Notes under the pieces: generated by a model
Seen by the model: the letters and a program-made list of their open reading frames with translations, nothing else
Told to the model about the DNA's origin: nothing
Databases searched by the model: none
Shown: positions 4,164 to 14,529 of the stretch, one piece after another
Layout of the letters: each line of letters starts with the position of its first letter
How positions within the stretch are numbered: the stretch's first letter is position 1
Sequence record: KY563228.1
Strand: one strand, 5' to 3'
Length of the DNA: 16,271 nt
Position numbers and translations under genes: made by a program

Positions 4164-4370
4164 ACCTTCAGCCCATTTATATTTATCACGTAAGCATTTA
4201 AAAAGGATGATAATTATCTTATCGCCCGTTAAACTGAAAGAAGATGATAACAATTCCTCACTTTTGCAAAAAACCGAATTTCGTGGACAGTGCTGCAGTG
4301 TAAAAATTCAATGAGTCTCATCTAAGGTTTTCTGACTGTCTCAACTAATCTTTATTTAGAGAATTTTTGC

Positions 4371-4644
4371 GTAGTAAGGACAATTTATACTACGTTACTA
4401 CGCTCTTTCAATTCAACATTGATTTTATTAAATTAAAAGTAAAAGTAACGTATGTAGTAACGTAGTATGGTGTAGTAAGGATTTTTATTTGAAGTGTATA
4501 GGCATCTTTATTTTTAATACCCCACTATTACCCCCCGCCTTACTACTTATACTACGTTACTACACGTTAATCCGCGTGTAATCTTATGTTGAAATGAAAG
4601 AAAGGTAACGGCGTAGTATAGCTTCAAAAAGTCTCTTATACTAC
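4371..4644. repeat. Nested inverted-repeat region with 11 TACTAC/GTAGTA hexamers
   Basis: 17-nt direct repeat TTATACTACGTTACTAC at 4385-4401 and 4547-4563; inverted copy at 4454-4468; inverted arms 4404-4419/4586-4601 (15/16) and 4386-4394/4612-4620. Confidence 0.9.
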
Positions 4645-4702
4645 AAAATTTATTCTGTTCCAGAATTTGTTGGTCCATATGTTGGTCCATATGCTGGACC
4701 AT
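4547..4702 (-). CDS. Possible 51-aa ORF (MVQHMDQHMDQQILEQ...) coupled to the nuclease stop; not in the ORF track
   Basis: TGATG stop/start overlap at 4700-4704; open frame to TAA at 4547-4549. It runs through repeat DNA, so it may be non-coding. Confidence 0.3.
   Translation of the reverse strand: MVQHMDQHMDQQILEQNKFCSIRDFLKLYYAVTFLSFQHKITRGLTCSNVV
4669..4702. repeat. 12-bp tandem repeat GTTGGTCCATAT x2 plus a degenerate third copy
   Basis: Copies at 4669-4680 and 4681-4692, then GCTGGACCAT. TGGTCCA (4683-4689) and TGGACCA (4695-4701) are also mutually inverted. Confidence 0.85.
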
Positions 4703-5301: not shown

Positions 5302-5710
5302 CTAAGAGTTCATTAATCTTTCTTAGCTTCTCATAATCTAACTTCCCTTCTTTCTTTAACTTCTCAAGTTTCTTTATAATATTGTCAGCTAATCCTTCGA
5401 TATAATATTTCTTTGCCCATCTTTCCAATGCATCACTAATTATTGAAATACTAAAGTGATGTGACTGTCTGACTATTGTATGTATTTTCTTAGCGATTTT
5501 CGCTATATCCAATTTAGAATCAGAATTCGTAATTATTAATGTCACGTCTGCATATGTAGCTATAATTTTGTCTTTCTCTATCTCTATAACGAGTTTGTAG
5601 CCATGCTGATGCGTTATTATAATCTTGTGTGGCTGAATTTCGATTGAAATTGTCGAAGCATTTTTATTGTGTGAATGAAGCTGAGCATATATTTCCGCCA
5701 TAGAAGTCAC
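5294..5710 (-). CDS. Hypothetical 138-aa protein
   Basis: GTG overlaps the d63 stop with SD GAGGGTGA upstream (alternative ATG 5701); its stop overlaps the next start. No homolog recognised. Confidence 0.75.
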
Positions 5711-5901
5711 GGCAGAGTCACCCTCAACAACTGGTACAACTCCATCTCGATTTTTTGCACTTGGAAATAGGCCTTCCCTAATTTCTGCTTATCCAAGTTC
5801 CCTAGTCTGGAGTCTATTGTAATCTCATGTATCAACGTTAATAATTCTCTTGTGTCTTCATCTAACATTCTTAATACTTCGCTCTTCAATACTTCTGTCA
5901 T
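5707..5901 (-). CDS. d63: SSV1 D63 homolog (ROP-like helical adaptor, 64 aa)
   Basis: [16 protein letters not shown]...[23 protein letters not shown] closely matches recalled SSV1 D63. Confidence 0.92.
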
Positions 5902-6359
5902 CAGTTCACCAACCTCCTTAAAGCATCTAATTTCTCTTGTAGATCTTTCATTCTTGAGATTGGCAAAACATACGCGTTCTGCTTTGCGTTAAAGTTGTTC
6001 TTCTGAATCGTTATTAGTAAGCTCTCTAACTCGTTTAACAGTTCCGTCAGCTTTGAGATATCTAATTTGACCTCACTTTTTGCCTCACTTTTACTTATAT
6101 TTATATTGAATACGACATTACTTCCCTGAGTTGACTTGTTAACAATATTTTGAAAAGCTTTTTTCAAGTCTTCAGGAATCTCAATGCCCTTTTCGACCGC
6201 TTTTGATATTATGTACGCAGAAACTAATTGTTTGAGTTCCGCTATATCGTCCTTATTGAGGTCTAAGGCCTCATAGATAACATAAATTGCTGTAGGAATT
6301 CTGACGCCAATAACTTTAGTCCTCTTGGCTTTCAAAATTTTATCTAAAAGATCTACCAT
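5901..6359 (-). CDS. 152-aa protein with an RHH-like N-terminus and C-terminal coiled coil
   Basis: [13 protein letters not shown] is a typical RHH beta-strand followed by a helix; SD GAGGTGA upstream; TGATG coupling to d63. Confidence 0.8.
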
Positions 6360-6366
6360 TTTTTTC

Positions 6367-6702
6367 TCACCTCTCTGAAACTTTTACTAAAACTAACTGA
6401 GTCAAAAATGACGTAAAAGTTGATAATTTACTCAGCCTACGAAAGAGTATATGGGGTATAGTTAGTATTAGAGGGAAAAGTGTTAACAAAGTGTTAACAC
6501 TTTTTATTTTAGTTAAAGTTTGGGGGGGTATACTCTTTTGAAAAGTGAGTAAATAGTAGGAGTTTAACGTTATTTTTGACTCGGGGTTTTTAGACAATTT
6601 TTGACTCAGTGTGAGTAACTTAGAAACGCTATTTGTTGTCATTAGTGACTCAGAGAAATATGACTGAGTAAACATATCGTTTTTGCCTAAATTTTGACTC
6701 AC
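6367..6702 (-). CDS. Low-complexity 111-aa ORF overlapping a large dyad-symmetry element
   Basis: GTGA overlap with the upstream gene suggests coupling, but the S/T/L/K-rich sequence mirrors the DNA repeats and the TGA stop is part of the next gene's SD. Confidence 0.45.
   Translation of the reverse strand: MSQNLGKNDMFTQSYFSESLMTTNSVSKLLTLSQKLSKNPESKITLNSYYLLTFQKSIPPQTLTKIKSVNTLLTLFPLILTIPHILFRRLSKLSTFTSFLTQLVLVKVSER
6387..6701. repeat. Phased dyad symmetry centred at 6490 plus nine T(G/T)ACTC iteron-like motifs
   Basis: Inverted arms 6476-6488/6492-6504 (13/13), 6442-6451/6529-6538 (10/10), 6427-6434/6546-6553 (8/8), 6399-6418/6563-6582 (18/20), 6387-6392/6588-6593 (6/6). Confidence 0.92.
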
Positions 6703-7163
6703 TGAATTTCCACCTCATTTAGTAAATTTAAAATAAAATCAACAATTACCTTACCTTTGTTGGATAATTTATAATATATTCTGGGGTCTGGGCTTACGCT
6801 ATATCTTTGCACTAATCCGAATAATTCTAGTTCATTCAGATACCTCTTGACATACATGCCGTTTGTTTTAGTTAGTTCTTCTATTTTTCTTACATGTAAC
6901 GACCCTTTTCTATATAATAATAGAAGTATCTTTAATTGCTTATCTTCCTTATTATATAAATTATAAAGCGAATAGTGGAAATCGTTAAGCATCTCTAATA
7001 AATTCTTTTGTAGTTTTTTCTTTGGGATAATCTTTATGGATTCTTCTCTCACAACTTCTTCAGTCTCTTCTTCATCCTTAACAACTTCTTCAGTCTCAAC
7101 AACTTCTTCTGTTTCGTTAACTACTTCCTCTTCATCCTTAACAATTTCCTCATCATAATTCAT
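6699..7163 (-). CDS. MarR/ArsR-like winged-helix protein with an acidic repetitive N-terminus (154 aa)
   Basis: C-terminal ILLLLYRKGSLHVRKIEE...VKRYLNELELFGLVQR...RIYYKLSNKGK is a wHTH signature; 21 of the first 42 residues are D/E. Confidence 0.88.
   Translation of the reverse strand: MNYDEEIVKDEEEVVNETEEVVETEEVVKDEEETEEVVREESIKIIPKKKLQKNLLEMLNDFHYSLYNLYNKEDKQLKILLLLYRKGSLHVRKIEELTKTNGMYVKRYLNELELFGLVQRYSVSPDPRIYYKLSNKGKVIVDFILNLLNEVEIQ
7051..7144. repeat. In-frame internal duplications encoding the acidic tail
   Basis: ACAACTTCTTCAGTCTC at 7051-7067 and 7081-7097; TCTTCATCCTTAACAA at 7069-7084 and 7129-7144. Confidence 0.85.
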
Positions 7164-7345
7164 TGCATCACCTCAGCAAATTTTTTCTTAATCTCGTCTT
7201 CATGTTCCTTTAGATAGGACTCTAACGCCTCATTTAGAATTTCCGAGAACGTTACGCCTCTTGTTGACGCAAGAATTTTTCCTTTCAAAAAAAGATCTTC
7301 CTTTATCTTAAGAGTTGTTTTTACATATTTTTCCACTCCACTCAT
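7160..7345 (-). CDS. RHH (CopG-like) transcription regulator, 61 aa from ATG 7345
   Basis: KTTLKIKEDLFLKGKILAST...TFSEILNEALESYL is an RHH pattern; leaderless start about 26 nt below the TATA box; ATGA overlap with the next gene. Confidence 0.85.
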   Translation of the reverse strand: MSGVEKYVKTTLKIKEDLFLKGKILASTRGVTFSEILNEALESYLKEHEDEIKKKFAEVMQ

Positions 7346-7347
7346 CA

Positions 7348-7385
7348 ATTTATCTATCTATCTATCTGACTATATAAATCTTTCT
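7348..7385 (-). promoter_or_regulatory. T5-like early promoter with GATA tandem operator repeats
   Basis: Minus strand AGAAAGATTTATATAGTCAGATAGATAGATAGATAAAT; TATA box at 7371-7378; 34/38 identical to the oppositely oriented promoter at 7868-7905. Confidence 0.85.
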
Positions 7386-7391
7386 GTTCAT

Positions 7392-7574
7392 CTATCTCTC
7401 TTTCTTCAATCTATCGATCTTTTCTAATAATACTTTGAATATCTCGTACGCCTCTTTTGCCTCTTTAGAATCTAGTAAACCTAATATTTTTAGAAACTCA
7501 GCGTAAGGGATAGTTACTGCACTCCCGCCTAAAGCTAGCAGTGTAGATAATAATTCCTTATATTTATTATCTAT
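7392..7574 (-). CDS. Hidden ~60-aa ORF without a canonical start codon (IDNKYKELLSTLLALGG...DRLKKER)
   Basis: Frame is open from 7601 to TAG 7392-7394, fills the gap after e73 and reads as a helical protein. There is no ATG/GTG/TTG near its 5' end; ATA at 7574 is the likely (mutated or non-canonical) start. Confidence 0.55.
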   Translation of the reverse strand: MDNKYKELLSTLLALGGSAVTIPYAEFLKILGLLDSKEAKEAYEIFKVLLEKIDRLKKER

Positions 7575-7850: not shown

Positions 7851-7911
7851 TTGATAGATTGATAGATAGAAAAATTTATATACTCAGATTGATAGATTGA
7901 TAAATAGAGGG
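7851..7911 (+). promoter_or_regulatory. T6-like early promoter with GATA/GATT repeats
   Basis: TTTATATA at 7875-7882 after BRE-like GAAAAA; GATTGATA at 7857, 7887 and 7895; SD GAGGG at 7907-7911. Confidence 0.85.
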
Positions 7912-12084: not shown

Positions 12085-14529
12085 ATGAAGTGGGGGCCAT
12101 CTTTACTACTACTAACCCTCTTACTCTTACCTATCTTCTTCTTACCAACAAACGGTGTTATAACCGGGCCTCATCCATACTTTGACGGCGGAGGAGGTTT
12201 TACCGGGCCTTTCTTCAAATACTCTAACACAATTCAAGTTGGATCCTCTACTTTTTCTTCTAAATACAATGGTTCAACCCTTTCTACCGCACCATGGCTT
12301 AACCCAACTTACGTTTCGATATACAACACTTACTACCTTCAAGTTTTACCGAATCAACAGTACATTTCAAATAACGTATCTCTTTCTCTTTCATCATCAC
12401 AAATCGCTCTAAACGTCACATGGTTATTAGCGTCTTCCAGTAATTCCGGATCCTACGGTTCTATCGCAATAGGTTACGGTGTAAATTTTCCTTCAGGATT
12501 TACGGGTAACTATGCACCCGCACCACCTTACGCCTCTGACGGAATTGTAGTTTATTTAGAGAAAGGAGGTTTTCCAACATATAGGCTATTTGTATATTTT
12601 GACGGAGTTAAGCAACTAAATGTTAGTGTGGGTTCTCTGTCTATAGGACAACAAATAGGTTTAGGGTTCTGGTACTTGCCCGCCTCAAACCAACTTTACG
12701 TTTATTACTATAACGGTACTCTAAAGACTTTTTCAATAACGCCGGGTCAAGTTATCAATAATCAATTTTATCCTCTTTCATTGAATACTATAAATAGTAA
12801 TTATGTCATTGATGCTCAAAATGTTGGGCCGGGTTATGGATATGGCCAATGGGTGTTAATATCATACTCAATCTTCCAAACTAAGACATATAGTGCAACA
12901 CTTAGCTATACATCTGTTATTTTAGGCAATGGTATTCAGGCTTTGGCGGGATTTACTGGTGCGTACAACCCTTTAAACGTGTCCACTAATGTGACCTCTT
13001 GGTCTGTTGTAGGTATCGTTAAGGTTGTAAATTATAGTGTTTCAAACTCACAATATTCATTGATAGGTAGTGTGAGTTACTTAACATCAACAAATACTGT
13101 TTACTTCATTCTTAATAATATTTACCCCGCACCTAGTGTAAACACATGGTATCTTAACGTAACGTTAGAGTTTCAGTTTGTAACGCCCTCAAGTACAGTC
13201 TACAAGAATATTACAATTCCGATTTTTGACGGGGGATTTGCGGTTCTTGTCCAAGTAAGCTTACCGCAATCATCATACCTATCAGGTCAAACAATCAGCG
13301 TTTCTAATTCTACAACTATTGAATATCCGCCTAATGCGGGATATTCGTTAGCCTTAAAACCTTTTACGCAAATTAATATTCAGGGGTTGACTAACGGCTT
13401 TGTGCCATTGCCTTATACAATCACACAGACCGTAAGTGTCATAACTACATATTATTACGTTATAAACATACAATTCGGTCAATTCTCTCTAGGTAGTGCT
13501 ACCGGTACGATAACGATATACCCCGTGAGCCAATTACCCGTCATTTTTGTCTCTTCTTATCCTACATCGGTCACCGCGGGTACTAAGGTGACTATAACTT
13601 TTCAATTCACTCTCAATACACCCGTTTCTAACGTAACAATGTCGGCGTTTACTTATTCGACTACTACTTTCGCATGGACTTACGCACAGATAGTTTCATC
13701 TTCATCTCTAATAGAGTTTAAGGGATATTGGCTTAACGCCAGTGATGGGATCATAATCATTACACAAAGTCAAAACTATTTAATTCCCTTCAATTACGTA
13801 GGTTTGACGTTTTATAACAACAGTGTTAACACAATTCAGATCAACATTGTAAATAACGCGTTACAACTGAATGTTAATAATAACGTGCTAAACTTAGCTA
13901 ACTCATCTAAAGTTATAGGATTAGGTTTCTATTACGGTGCGGGGAAGTTAGTGTTAAACTGGTTCTTTGTTAGCGGTATCGTTTTGCAGTCTGCCACTGC
14001 AAATCAGGCGTATACGATTCTCGTAGGTACTTCACTTTCAACATTGTCACAATATACAAATGGATACACGAATGCGTCAGGGTTTGGACAAGTGACAGTG
14101 ACGCTTACATATACTCCTTACGAGTTAGTGGAAATCTATTGGGGCGGATTGCAGAAATACACTATACTCAACATTAGCGTCACTCAGCCTACTACAACTA
14201 CAACTACGACTGTGAATACTACAACAATAAACTACAACTACACTAATCCGTTTAGTAACAACATATCGCCTACATCAACATTATACAACTTCAGTAATGC
14301 CCAACCATGGGCTGAGCTTATAGGGATTGTTGTTACGGTGTTAGTAACTTTACTAGGGTGGAAGTTTGGCGGAAAAGGAGGTGCGTCAGGAGGTGCAGTG
14401 ATGGGGCTAATAATGGTTTCATACTTAGGCTTAGTGCCATGGTACATCTTTTACGTCTTCATTTTCGGCATAGCGTTACTATTAGCGAAAATATTCGTAG
14501 ACAAGTTTATGGGGAGTGATGAAGAATGA
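12085..14529 (+). CDS. vp4: VP4 tail/adsorption glycoprotein, SSV1 C792 homolog (814 aa)
   Basis: Signal peptide; PYFDGGGG; many N-x-S/T sequons; Thr-rich linker; C-terminal TM helices; followed by b78. Confidence 0.93.
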   Translation: MKWGPSLLLLTLLLLPIFFLPTNGVITGPHPYFDGGGGFTGPFFKYSNTIQVGSSTFSSKYNGSTLSTAPWLNPTYVSIYNTYYLQVLPNQQYISNNVSLSLSSSQIALNVTWLLASSSNSGSYGSIAIGYGVNFPSGFTGNYAPAPPYASDGIVVYLEKGGFPTYRLFVYFDGVKQLNVSVGSLSIGQQIGLGFWYLPASNQLYVYYYNGTLKTFSITPGQVINNQFYPLSLNTINSNYVIDAQNVGPGYGYGQWVLISYSIFQTKTYSATLSYTSVILGNGIQALAGFTGAYNPLNVSTNVTSWSVVGIVKVVNYSVSNSQYSLIGSVSYLTSTNTVYFILNNIYPAPSVNTWYLNVTLEFQFVTPSSTVYKNITIPIFDGGFAVLVQVSLPQSSYLSGQTISVSNSTTIEYPPNAGYSLALKPFTQINIQGLTNGFVPLPYTITQTVSVITTYYYVINIQFGQFSLGSATGTITIYPVSQLPVIFVSSYPTSVTAGTKVTITFQFTLNTPVSNVTMSAFTYSTTTFAWTYAQIVSSSSLIEFKGYWLNASDGIIIITQSQNYLIPFNYVGLTFYNNSVNTIQINIVNNALQLNVNNNVLNLANSSKVIGLGFYYGAGKLVLNWFFVSGIVLQSATANQAYTILVGTSLSTLSQYTNGYTNASGFGQVTVTLTYTPYELVEIYWGGLQKYTILNISVTQPTTTTTTTVNTTTINYNYTNPFSNNISPTSTLYNFSNAQPWAELIGIVVTVLVTLLGWKFGGKGGASGGAVMGLIMVSYLGLVPWYIFYVFIFGIALLLAKIFVDKFMGSDEE

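Follow-up and report, generated by a model that had tools for sequence, protein, structure and literature searches.

A probable protein-binding DNA platform at the position of an annotated essential gene in the spindle-shaped virus SSV10

Regulators of the PlrA family, ORF80 of plasmid pRN1 and Stf76 of pSSVx, bind operators of the form TTAA-N7-TTAA that lie upstream of the regulator's own gene (PMC4027180). The two TTAA motifs have their centres 11 bp apart, at least two protein molecules bind cooperatively on one face of the helix, and pSSVx is a satellite of fuselloviruses (PMC4027180). Here we describe a DNA element with a core of the same geometry in Sulfolobus spindle-shaped virus (SSV) Lassen, SSV10, whose complete genome (KY563228.1, 16,271 bp; 100% identity) is the window of this analysis. 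The element occupies positions 6376-6701 of the early minus-strand operon named T5 in the SSV10 paper, where the open reading frame (ORF) over it is F111, a predicted "transmembrane protein, replication complex" (PMC6080066); the GenBank coding sequence at this place is F102 (6367-6675). The core of the element (6476-6504) is nearly identical to positions 418-445 of pRN1, matching operator site A of ORF80 at 22 of 26 positions and site A of Stf76 from pSSVx at 17 of 20. With the 11-bp geometry and the host genus also shared, the operators of the pRN-family plasmids appear to be the closest experimentally studied analogue. The SSV10 locus differs from the PlrA system in that its inferred ligand, D152, is unrelated in sequence and carries a C-terminal coiled-coil part, in that six other classes of core lack TTAA, and in that the core is set between arrays of sites for a second protein. 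A phmmer search of pRN1 ORF80 against the six-frame ORFs of SSV10 gave no homolog of ORF80 or Stf76 (best E value of 0.07, short of the inclusion threshold), and a Pfam scan of the module proteins gave no Sulfolobus_pRN match. The element was not described in the literature searched, the SSV10 paper treating the stretch as a protein gene (PMC6080066). Site arrays for small DNA-binding proteins are well known; the specific element, the two-ligand modular code and the re-annotation are new.

We put at roughly 85% the probability that 6376-6701 is cis-acting protein-binding DNA with D152 and D154 as its ligands, a judgement made from comparative sequence analysis; for the fuller statement, in which the element also acts on transcription as an operator, we would give even odds. 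The element lies between the stop codon of the upstream gene, D154 (6699-7163, minus strand), and the ribosome-binding site of the downstream gene, D152 (5901-6359, minus strand). A Shine-Dalgarno-like GGTGAG (6366-6371, minus strand), read from the sequence 6 nt 5' of the D152 ATG (6357-6359), is kept in all relatives, including those that have no open frame over the element. The comparison set comprised about 20 related viruses and metagenome contigs, and homologous elements were found at the same locus in 13 SSV genomes and several of the contigs. When SSV10 was compared with SSV-RH and M.14.25, 6376-6701 was the most conserved DNA within 5700-7350. A Tn5 insertion at 6453, inside the element, yields a nonfunctional virus, and Tn5 insertions are lethal in all four genes of the module (PMC6080066).

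The coding status of F111 was examined by Nei-Gojobori counting of substitutions between SSV10 and SSV-RH, NL01B.C01.14, and M.14.25. F111 showed a ratio of nonsynonymous to synonymous substitution rates (dN/dS) of 0.59 to 0.91, a dS of 0.16 to 0.24, and no third-position bias. The neighbouring genes D152, D154, and E62 showed a strong third-position excess, with dN/dS of 0.07 to 0.24 (0.15 to 0.22 for D152) and dS of 0.5 to 1.8. Between SSV10 and M.14.25, substitutions at the three codon positions numbered 21, 18, and 20 in F111 (dN/dS, 0.91; dS, 0.24), 59, 29, and 84 in D152 (dN/dS, 0.22; dS, 1.79), and 42, 18, and 59 in D154 (dN/dS, 0.17; dS, 1.2). The dS of F111 was thus 4 to 7 times below that of the flanking genes and, together with the even spread over codon positions, means that its "synonymous" sites are several-fold more constrained than those of its real neighbours, without codon periodicity. 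In SSV13 and SSV15 the conserved left part is open in another frame and its product is nonhydrophobic; the metagenome relatives L024 to L026 have one to seven stops in each sense frame; no coding sequence is called over the stretch in SSV3, L025, L026, and L027; and the core lies in plainly noncoding DNA in SSV20 and in the virus of metagenome contig ERZ27247208 k141_47264 (L028). In SSV6 the D152 homolog has taken in the central part as an N-terminal extension of low complexity. Such extensions (KQTSNKQTQTNPQTNP and similar), seen in SSV6 (6690-6823) and in gp22 of SSeV, translate the repeat element, ORFs having annexed cis-acting DNA. Pfam gave no match for F111. The first-pass annotation had spoken of iterons hidden inside a 111-amino-acid ORF, had argued that coding does not explain the symmetry of the stretch, and had called it a cis element. 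The last two statements are borne out by the substitution test and by the stops in every sense frame of relatives; the ORF, in contrast, is itself not conserved, and F111 (6367-6702, minus strand; F102 in GenBank) is probably not a functional protein-coding gene.

The SSV10 element combines two identical 8-bp TGTTAACA sites, one helical turn apart, with flanking inverted pairs of TGAGTMA heptamers whose members are about three turns apart, so that two core sites and eight or nine heptamer boxes lie within 326 bp. The core sites (6481-6488 and 6492-6499, 11 bp centre to centre) can also be read as TTAA-N7-TTAA, with TTAA at 6484-6487 and 6495-6498. Directly to the right of the core is a T/A-rich tract, TTTTTATTTTAGTTAAAGTTT (6501-6521, plus strand). 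The left GGGGTATA(G) box (6453-6460, plus strand) contains the lethal Tn5 site (PMC6080066) and has the same orientation in nearly all relatives, and the right box, a G7 tract with a TATA box (6522-6532, plus strand), is an asymmetric feature oriented like the left one, the GGGGTATA boxes being at 6453 and 6525. In M.14.25 and SSV4 the right box reads GGGGGTATAGTG, which indicates that a direct repeat is conserved here and not the 10/10 inverted arm. The left arm unit, TGAGTCA-N23-TTACTCA (6398-6434), is an inverted copy of the first right unit, TGAGTAA-N24-TGACTCG (6546-6583), and the half unit TTTTAGACAATTTTTGACTCA (6588-6608; direct-repeat families D1 to D3) is followed by two more right units, TGAGTAA-N27-TGACTCA (6612-6652) and TGAGTAA-N23-TGACTCA (6665-6701). 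Units of this type occur once to the left of the core and about 3.5 times to its right; the last, which ends at the D154 stop codon, is present in M.14.25 and truncated in SSV-RH. The heptamers themselves lie at 6398, 6546, 6612, and 6665 on the plus strand and at 6428, 6602, 6646, and 6695 on the minus strand, with a degenerate copy, TGACTCG, at 6577-6583. The genome has 10 copies of TGAGTMA, and a stretch of 304 bp, between 6398 and 6701, holds 8 of them. In NL01B.C01.03 (L003) the element contains, at about 1740-1830, an 83-nt duplication of the left arm and the GTATAG block that has an N at its joint and truncates the annotated ORF; it may be an assembly artefact or a real tandem duplication.

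The symmetry is real. Around the axis at 6490, 59 of 110 positions are complementary, the highest count among about 32,000 axes in the genome (mean, 28.9; standard deviation, 4.8; runner-up, 50), and when the element was aligned, with gaps, to its own reverse complement, the score was z = 12.4 against shuffles. All five co-axial arm pairs of the first-pass annotation are present: 13/13 around a 3-nt spacer (6476-6488 and 6492-6504), 10/10 (6442-6451 and 6529-6538), a pair called 8/8 that measures 9/9 (6426-6434 and 6546-6554), 18/20 (6399-6418 and 6563-6582; coordinate sum, 12981), and 6/6 (6387-6392 and 6588-6593). Its tandem 11-mer (6477-6487 and 6488-6498) and G7 tract (6522-6528) are exact, as is its 16-bp palindrome at 6488-6503, which has its own axis at 6495.5, however, and not at 6490; its nine T(G/T)ACTC motifs all exist, but several were placed 1 to 4 nt off. 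The symmetry ends beyond about 95 bp on either side of the axis. What did not hold is the idea that a dyad kept in register is the selected feature. The core survives in direct or inverted form, and the 10/10 arm is lineage specific and broken in M.14.25; set against protein conservation in relatives, the DNA element is kept, but neither the in-register dyad nor the ORF is.

The core variants make this plain. In M.14.25 and SSV3/4/5 the core reads AAAAGTGTAGACA-AAG-TGTCTACACTTTT, a compensated double change that destroys the tandem 11-mer and that, taken alone, would favour a hairpin. In L024 to L026 both copies read TGTTGACA in direct register, so that the tandem repeat is kept and the palindrome is broken; L023 has two direct 13-mers and its close relative L027 a perfect 17/17 palindrome; and SSV15 and SSV6 have two tandem 11-mers at 11 bp and no central palindrome. 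The paired sites are always identical, whether direct (L024 to L026, L023, and core 2 of SSV20), inverted (M.14.25, SSV3 to SSV5, and L027), or both (SSV10). They follow TGTNNACA or TGTCTGWCAGACA, are internally two-fold symmetric, and are spaced at 11 bp in six classes and at 15 bp in the 13-mer class. The sole invariant of the core is thus a pair of identical duplex sites at a fixed spacing in either relative orientation, which argues for a dimeric protein, two copies of which recognise double-stranded DNA, and not for a hairpin, a cruciform, or a simple iteron. The long dyad symmetry would then be a by-product of the layout of dimer sites, with no requirement for a hairpin or cruciform.

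The protein that varies with the core is D152. Members of the D152 family have a conserved C-terminal part and a variable N terminus, comprising a predicted extended segment and the first helix, and seven N-terminal classes pair one-to-one with seven core classes, without exception among about 20 distinct sequences. The predicted strand KVIG[VI]R[IL]P or RTIGIRLP accompanies two copies of TGTTAACA; KVVSIRLP, two copies of TGTTGACA; R[IV]FSVRIP, the pair TGTAGACA / TGTCTACA; SELFFRVHS, two copies of TGTCTGWCAGACA; TEIFFRTST, pairs of TCTGWCAGA; SLLAFRIN, GTTTGTTTGAC GTTTGTTTAAC; and TRIEFRISV, the core of SSV13. SSV6, a betafusellovirus from Iceland, and SSV15, from Kamchatka, belong to different genera and share both the strand SLLAFRIN and an identical 22-nt core. 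L021 and L025 form a minimal pair: to the right of the left arm only 3 of about 146 positions differ, 2 of these 3 being the same A-to-G change in both core sites, and the adjacent 5' end of the D152 gene is heavily divergent. This co-variation points to the central sites as docking sites for D152 and, with that of the arms described below, strongly backs the suggestion of the first-pass annotation that the flanking 152- and 154-residue proteins are the binders, the modular pattern extending over about 20 genomes.

The N terminus of D152 may be ribbon-helix-helix (RHH)-like. Operators of RHH proteins (Arc, Mnt, CopG, and omega/ParG) resemble the SSV10 core in having two sub-sites one helical turn apart. 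Each sub-site is read by a dimer, and an N-terminal strand sets specificity. The core-linked variation of D152 falls exactly on the predicted N-terminal strand and first helix, as in RHH readers, and the RHH reading is suggested mainly because the specificity-linked variation sits where RHH proteins read bases. An AlphaFold2 model from 18 sequences (predicted local distance difference test score [pLDDT], 64) has an extended segment, helices at residues 23-32 and 36-56, and then a helical hairpin or coiled coil, and would be compatible with an RHH N terminus; a profile comparison with SSV RHH proteins (hhalign) placed the RHH register correctly but was weak, with a probability of only 7.5%. Foldseek against the PDB returned nothing under E = 0.4, a PDB profile search returned coiled-coil noise only, and the N-terminal halves of the family had no Pfam match. 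D152 also differs from the RHH examples in its length of 152 residues and its extra C-terminal domain, and its RHH fold is only putative. The D152 gene is a mosaic: that of M.14.25 has its N-terminal half in common with SSV4 and its C-terminal 50 residues in common with SSV13 and SSV15 (window compared with L005, L017, and L006), a pattern that indicates recombination inside the gene.

The heptamer boxes follow D154 in the same manner. D154 consists of an acidic N-terminal tail of about 45 residues followed by a MarR/Lrs14-type winged helix (Pfam MarR, E = 3e-4; PDB profile matches to an Lrs14-like protein and to MarR family members). The boxes switch as one set per lineage, and there are three sets: TGAGTMA at a pair spacing of about 31 bp in SSV10, SSV-RH, the NL viruses, and M.14.25 (MarR type A); TGGGTAA at about 21 bp, a difference of one helical turn, in SSV3/4/5, SSV13, and SSV15 (MarR type B); and GGGACTA in L021 and L023 to L027, where the winged helix is replaced and the acidic tail kept. 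Replacement of the winged helix goes together with replacement of the arms. The 13 database viruses that have heptamer arms are exactly the ones with D154-type genes, and L028, SSV6, and SSV20, which have a D152 homolog and a core, have neither a D154-type gene nor heptamer arms. In M.14.25 and L021 the modules are interleaved in the order D152 type x, left arm y, core x, right arms y, winged helix y, which makes simple linkage by recombination blocks a poor explanation of the pairing. The co-variation thus suggests that the TGAGTMA boxes are D154 docking sites. The product of E62 was rejected as a ligand of arms or core because viruses that differ in arms and core share it at about 80% identity and because NL14 carries a replacement while its element is unchanged. 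The glutamate- and valine-rich tail of D154 (about 45 residues) is kept in the homologs of L021 and L023 to L027 even where the winged helix has been replaced, and the SSV-RH annotation records a direct repeat ("unique element") in the region coding for it.

Known readers of the MarR type use their sites differently. A typical MarR operator is a single palindrome of 16 to 20 bp with half-sites about 10 bp apart, overlapping a promoter. Unlike these, the heptamers form pairs with a centre-to-centre distance of about 31 bp (SSV10) or about 21 bp (SSV4 and SSV13), and no promoter was identified in the element. In the pleolipovirus SNJ2 a hairpin origin is read by the MarR-like domain of RepSNJ2 (PMC13107129). 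SNJ2 and SSV10 have in common an archaeal virus as host of the element, a palindromic sequence (at the end of an operon in SNJ2), and a MarR-like winged helix as proposed reader. In SNJ2, however, the winged helix belongs to a fusion protein that also contains a rolling-circle endonuclease and its catalytic tyrosine, whereas D154 is an acidic tail and winged helix only, and Pfam and PHROGs scans found no nuclease in the SSV10 module.

From these comparisons we would picture 6376-6701 as a composite docking platform of double-stranded DNA in place of a protein-coding gene. Two D152 dimers, made from the gene immediately downstream, would bind the central sites cooperatively; D154, the acidic-tailed winged helix encoded immediately upstream, would bind the flanking boxes; and the GGGGTATA boxes and the T-rich tract would give the element a direction. 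The bound complex would most likely serve as an operator or roadblock inside the T5 operon and gate expression of D152 and later genes, that is, act in autoregulation. Several points weigh against this picture. The lethality of insertions in all four module genes exceeds what would be expected for a dispensable regulator, for which polarity on D152 could be the explanation. In SSV10 the element sits mid-operon and not at a recognised promoter (the T5 promoter, at 7344-7420, carries other repeats and is about 850 bp away), and no convincing archaeal promoter was identified inside it. The fold of D152 is open to the doubts given above, and the ligand assignments derive from co-variation among related sequences. 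By our estimate a 111-codon open frame in 32% G+C DNA has a chance of about 2e-4 per frame, and between SSV10 and SSV-RH this frame is kept through one deletion and one insertion of 3 nt each; coupling, or the avoidance of polarity, may favour translation through the element.

The alternatives divide by what they take the element to be. That F111/F102 is a genuine small membrane protein, as annotated, with the repeats tolerated inside its coding sequence, would account for the open frame, which is open also in SSV-RH, NL14, and M.14.25, for the existence of a PHROG family (phrog_26550), and for the lethal insertion at 6453; the substitution counts, the stops and alternative frame in relatives, the noncoding cores of L028 and SSV20, and the compensated core change of M.14.25, which alters two residues, make it highly improbable. 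The core resembles the ORF80/Stf76 operator closely enough that a plasmid-type winged helix (PlrA, ORF80, or Stf76), coming from a co-resident pRN-family plasmid or the host, could be what docks on it, with D152 acting elsewhere and with cross-talk between virus and plasmid. This fits the near-identity of the sites, their common TTAA-N7-TTAA geometry, and the satellite status of pSSVx (PMC4027180), but SSV10 encodes no ORF80 homolog, only the TTAA class resembles the operator (each of the other six classes pairing with its own D152 N terminus), and D152 homologs are absent from plasmids, so that we hold it to be quite improbable. Function in a folded single strand, whether an RNA hairpin (a terminator, attenuator, or processing site formed by the core stem and a U run on the plus strand) or a DNA hairpin or cruciform, seems improbable. 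Folding is much stronger than in shuffles for either strand (z = -7.9 and -8.8); a run of T5 to T7 follows the core on the plus strand in every variant, at a position that corresponds in the L028 virus and SSV1 to the annotated alternative T-ind terminator; and two broken pairs in L024 to L026 become G.T wobbles on the plus strand. The stem is compensated in M.14.25 and SSV4, but relatives otherwise show these wobbles, direct repeats (L023 and core 2 of SSV20), or, in SSV15 and SSV6, no hairpin at all with the two tandem sites at 11 bp kept. The 10/10 arm is uncompensated in M.14.25, conservation of the heptamers is one of sequence, every copy in a lineage changing at once, and not of pairing, the units outside the symmetric zone form stems of only 5 bp, and Rfam gave no family. 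A site of centromere type, or one for packaging or other handling of the genome, where small DNA-binding proteins would occupy the array of short inverted boxes as in sopC- or parC-type partition sites, would suit the repeated units of about 37 to 50 bp, each with a pair of 7-bp inverted boxes confined to one locus, as well as the episomal persistence of fuselloviruses. It is very doubtful given that Pfam and PHROGs scans of the seven T5-operon products beside the element (the rest of the genome lying outside these scans) found no partition nucleoside triphosphatase, that many fuselloviruses lack the module, and that it has no link to virion genes.

An origin of replication, or an origin-selector module, is an unlikely alternative that nevertheless deserves weight. 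In this reading D152, as the origin-binding protein, would occupy the central sites, and D154 would assist as an auxiliary factor at the flanking boxes. Opening would take place in the T/A-rich tract or in the easily melted stretch next to it, replication proteins of the host or the virus (B251-type in the latter case) would be brought in, and specificity would be exchanged as modules, as in lambdoid ori and O-protein pairs. In lambdoid phages the ori iterons lie inside gene O, and the N-terminal domain of the O protein co-varies with the sites. SSV10 is similar in its dyad-symmetric repeats within an ORF, its adjacent A/T-rich stretch, and its joint exchange of sites and N-terminal domain; it is unlike lambda, with its real gene and proven initiator, in that the ORF lacks coding constraint and the proposed binder is encoded beside the sites. 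The element is the strongest dyad of the genome, repeated sites of two classes lie on either side of an A/T-rich tract that has G-strings, and only one 60-bp window in the genome has a less stable duplex than 6720-6779, which lies 20 bp from the last arm; the core region itself, however, is not unusually meltable, at -70 to -73 kcal per 60 bp where the genome averages -75.5, and core and T-tract are just slightly below average stability. The four module genes and the insertion point at 6453 are essential (PMC6080066), a result that polarity on D152 could also explain. No SSV origin has been characterised according to the literature (PMC6080066), in line with the first-pass annotation, and the sole published SSV10 candidate (4260-4700) is conserved in no other virus. 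In L028 the core lies exactly between the 3' ends of the B49 (T-ind) and F55 (T-lys) homologs, and the T-ind/T-lys region was once proposed as the SSV1 origin (PMC9608457). Weighing against an origin, the Pfam and PHROGs scans found no replication enzyme or initiator-like domain in or beside the module: D152, D154, and E62 gave regulator-type matches or none, and no Rep, AAA+, primase, or helicase domain. SSV1 lacks the module (both D152 and the core are missing), which also went undetected in most other fuselloviruses, which share a conserved DnaA-like gene, located 3.5 kb from the element in SSV10 (PMC6080066). The inferred ligands belong to regulator families, and the core matches a characterised autoregulatory operator. 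Boxes of the origin recognition box (ORB) type, which mark archaeal Orc1/Cdc6 origins, are lacking: the mini-ORB-like TCCAGTGGAAAC gave 12 matches with up to 3 mismatches against 11.1 expected, none of them in 6376-6701, a weak test since this consensus does not come from a curated source. GC and AT skew follows gene orientation and so cannot locate an origin, which leaves the GC skew uninformative; 6250-7000 departs from the skew of its minus-strand neighbours. Decidedly unlikely, in our view, is the bolder statement that this is the long-sought origin of this fusellovirus group, a two-key lock (D152 for the core, D154 for the boxes) whose keys and locks are swapped as independent modules; if true, the likeness of the core to the pRN-family operator would link replication control of helper virus and satellite.

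On the reading of 6376-6701 as a docking platform for D152 and D154, what is annotated in SSV10 as an "essential transmembrane protein", together with its counterparts (D110, ORF64, and others), turns into cis-acting DNA, which changes how the published transposon map is read. Two concrete candidate protein-DNA pairs are added to a field in which almost no fusellovirus regulatory circuit is known beyond F55 of SSV1, and natural specificity variants are at hand, seven for the core and three for the arms. The search area for a fusellovirus origin or early switch is narrowed, the L028 core lying in the region long proposed, but never shown, to be the SSV1 origin, and the likeness of the core to the pRN1 and pSSVx operators suggests possible cross-talk between viruses and satellite plasmids.

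The element was also sought outside fuselloviruses. The core pattern gave a single chance match, in Pseudomonas, among 185,579 species genomes, and a search of species genomes for related loci gave no D152 relative. Plasmid searches with the element, D152, and the "Tori" region described below gave no match, a 35-nt query at E <= 10 returning mostly chance matches in Bacillus. A miniature inverted-repeat transposable element or other mobile palindromic element was considered and rejected, each virus having a single copy and no dispersed ones. In a scan of IMG/VR with the core pattern, five of nine matches were unrelated and were discarded as terminator-like hairpins; among these, L009, L015, and L016 share core and flank, with terminase, portal, and GroEL-like genes in L015, and L012 and L014 have noncomplementary arms.

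Tandem repeats for a small regulator are known from SSV1, where F55 operators lie at the T5, T6, T-ind, and T-lys promoters (PMC9608457). The SSV10 element is like these in being such an array (for an RHH protein in SSV1) in an early control region; it differs in its repeat sequence and protein and in lying inside the T5 operon. SSV10 itself lacks F55 and B49 (PMC6080066), and F55 and its promoter have been described as unique to SSV1 (PMC6080066). The L028 contig encodes an F55 homolog with 95% identity and a B49 homolog with 80% identity (1978-2145 and 2306-2455), so that this virus combines an SSV1-type switch with the D152 module. Its core is flanked by GATAGA/TATA repeats like those at the T5 and T6 promoters of SSV10, and GATAGA-type repeats, found also in the T-ind/T-lys intergenic region of SSV1, thus flank in both viruses the place where the D152 core sits in L028. 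At the divergent T5 and T6 promoters of SSV10, 7344-7420 and 7853-7908 form a 56-nt inverted repeat (82% complementary) with 8-bp repeats of the GATAGA/TCTATC type around TTTATATA boxes; an F55-like or another early regulator probably uses them as operators.

Two further loci were noted in the window. The published origin candidate of SSV10, "Tori" (4260-4700; ORF A49 with its flanks), ranks second in strength among the dyad clusters of the genome and contains three copies of ATACTACGTTACTAC and a 16/16 inverted repeat (4453-4468 and 4549-4564), the latter enclosing an AT-rich stretch; no other phage or plasmid record gave a detectable match, and the candidate is therefore unique to SSV10. Finally, a further GTGTTAACAC palindrome, equivalent to one core half-site, occurs at 13823-13832 within the large tail-fibre-like gene (12085-14529) and is probably due to chance.

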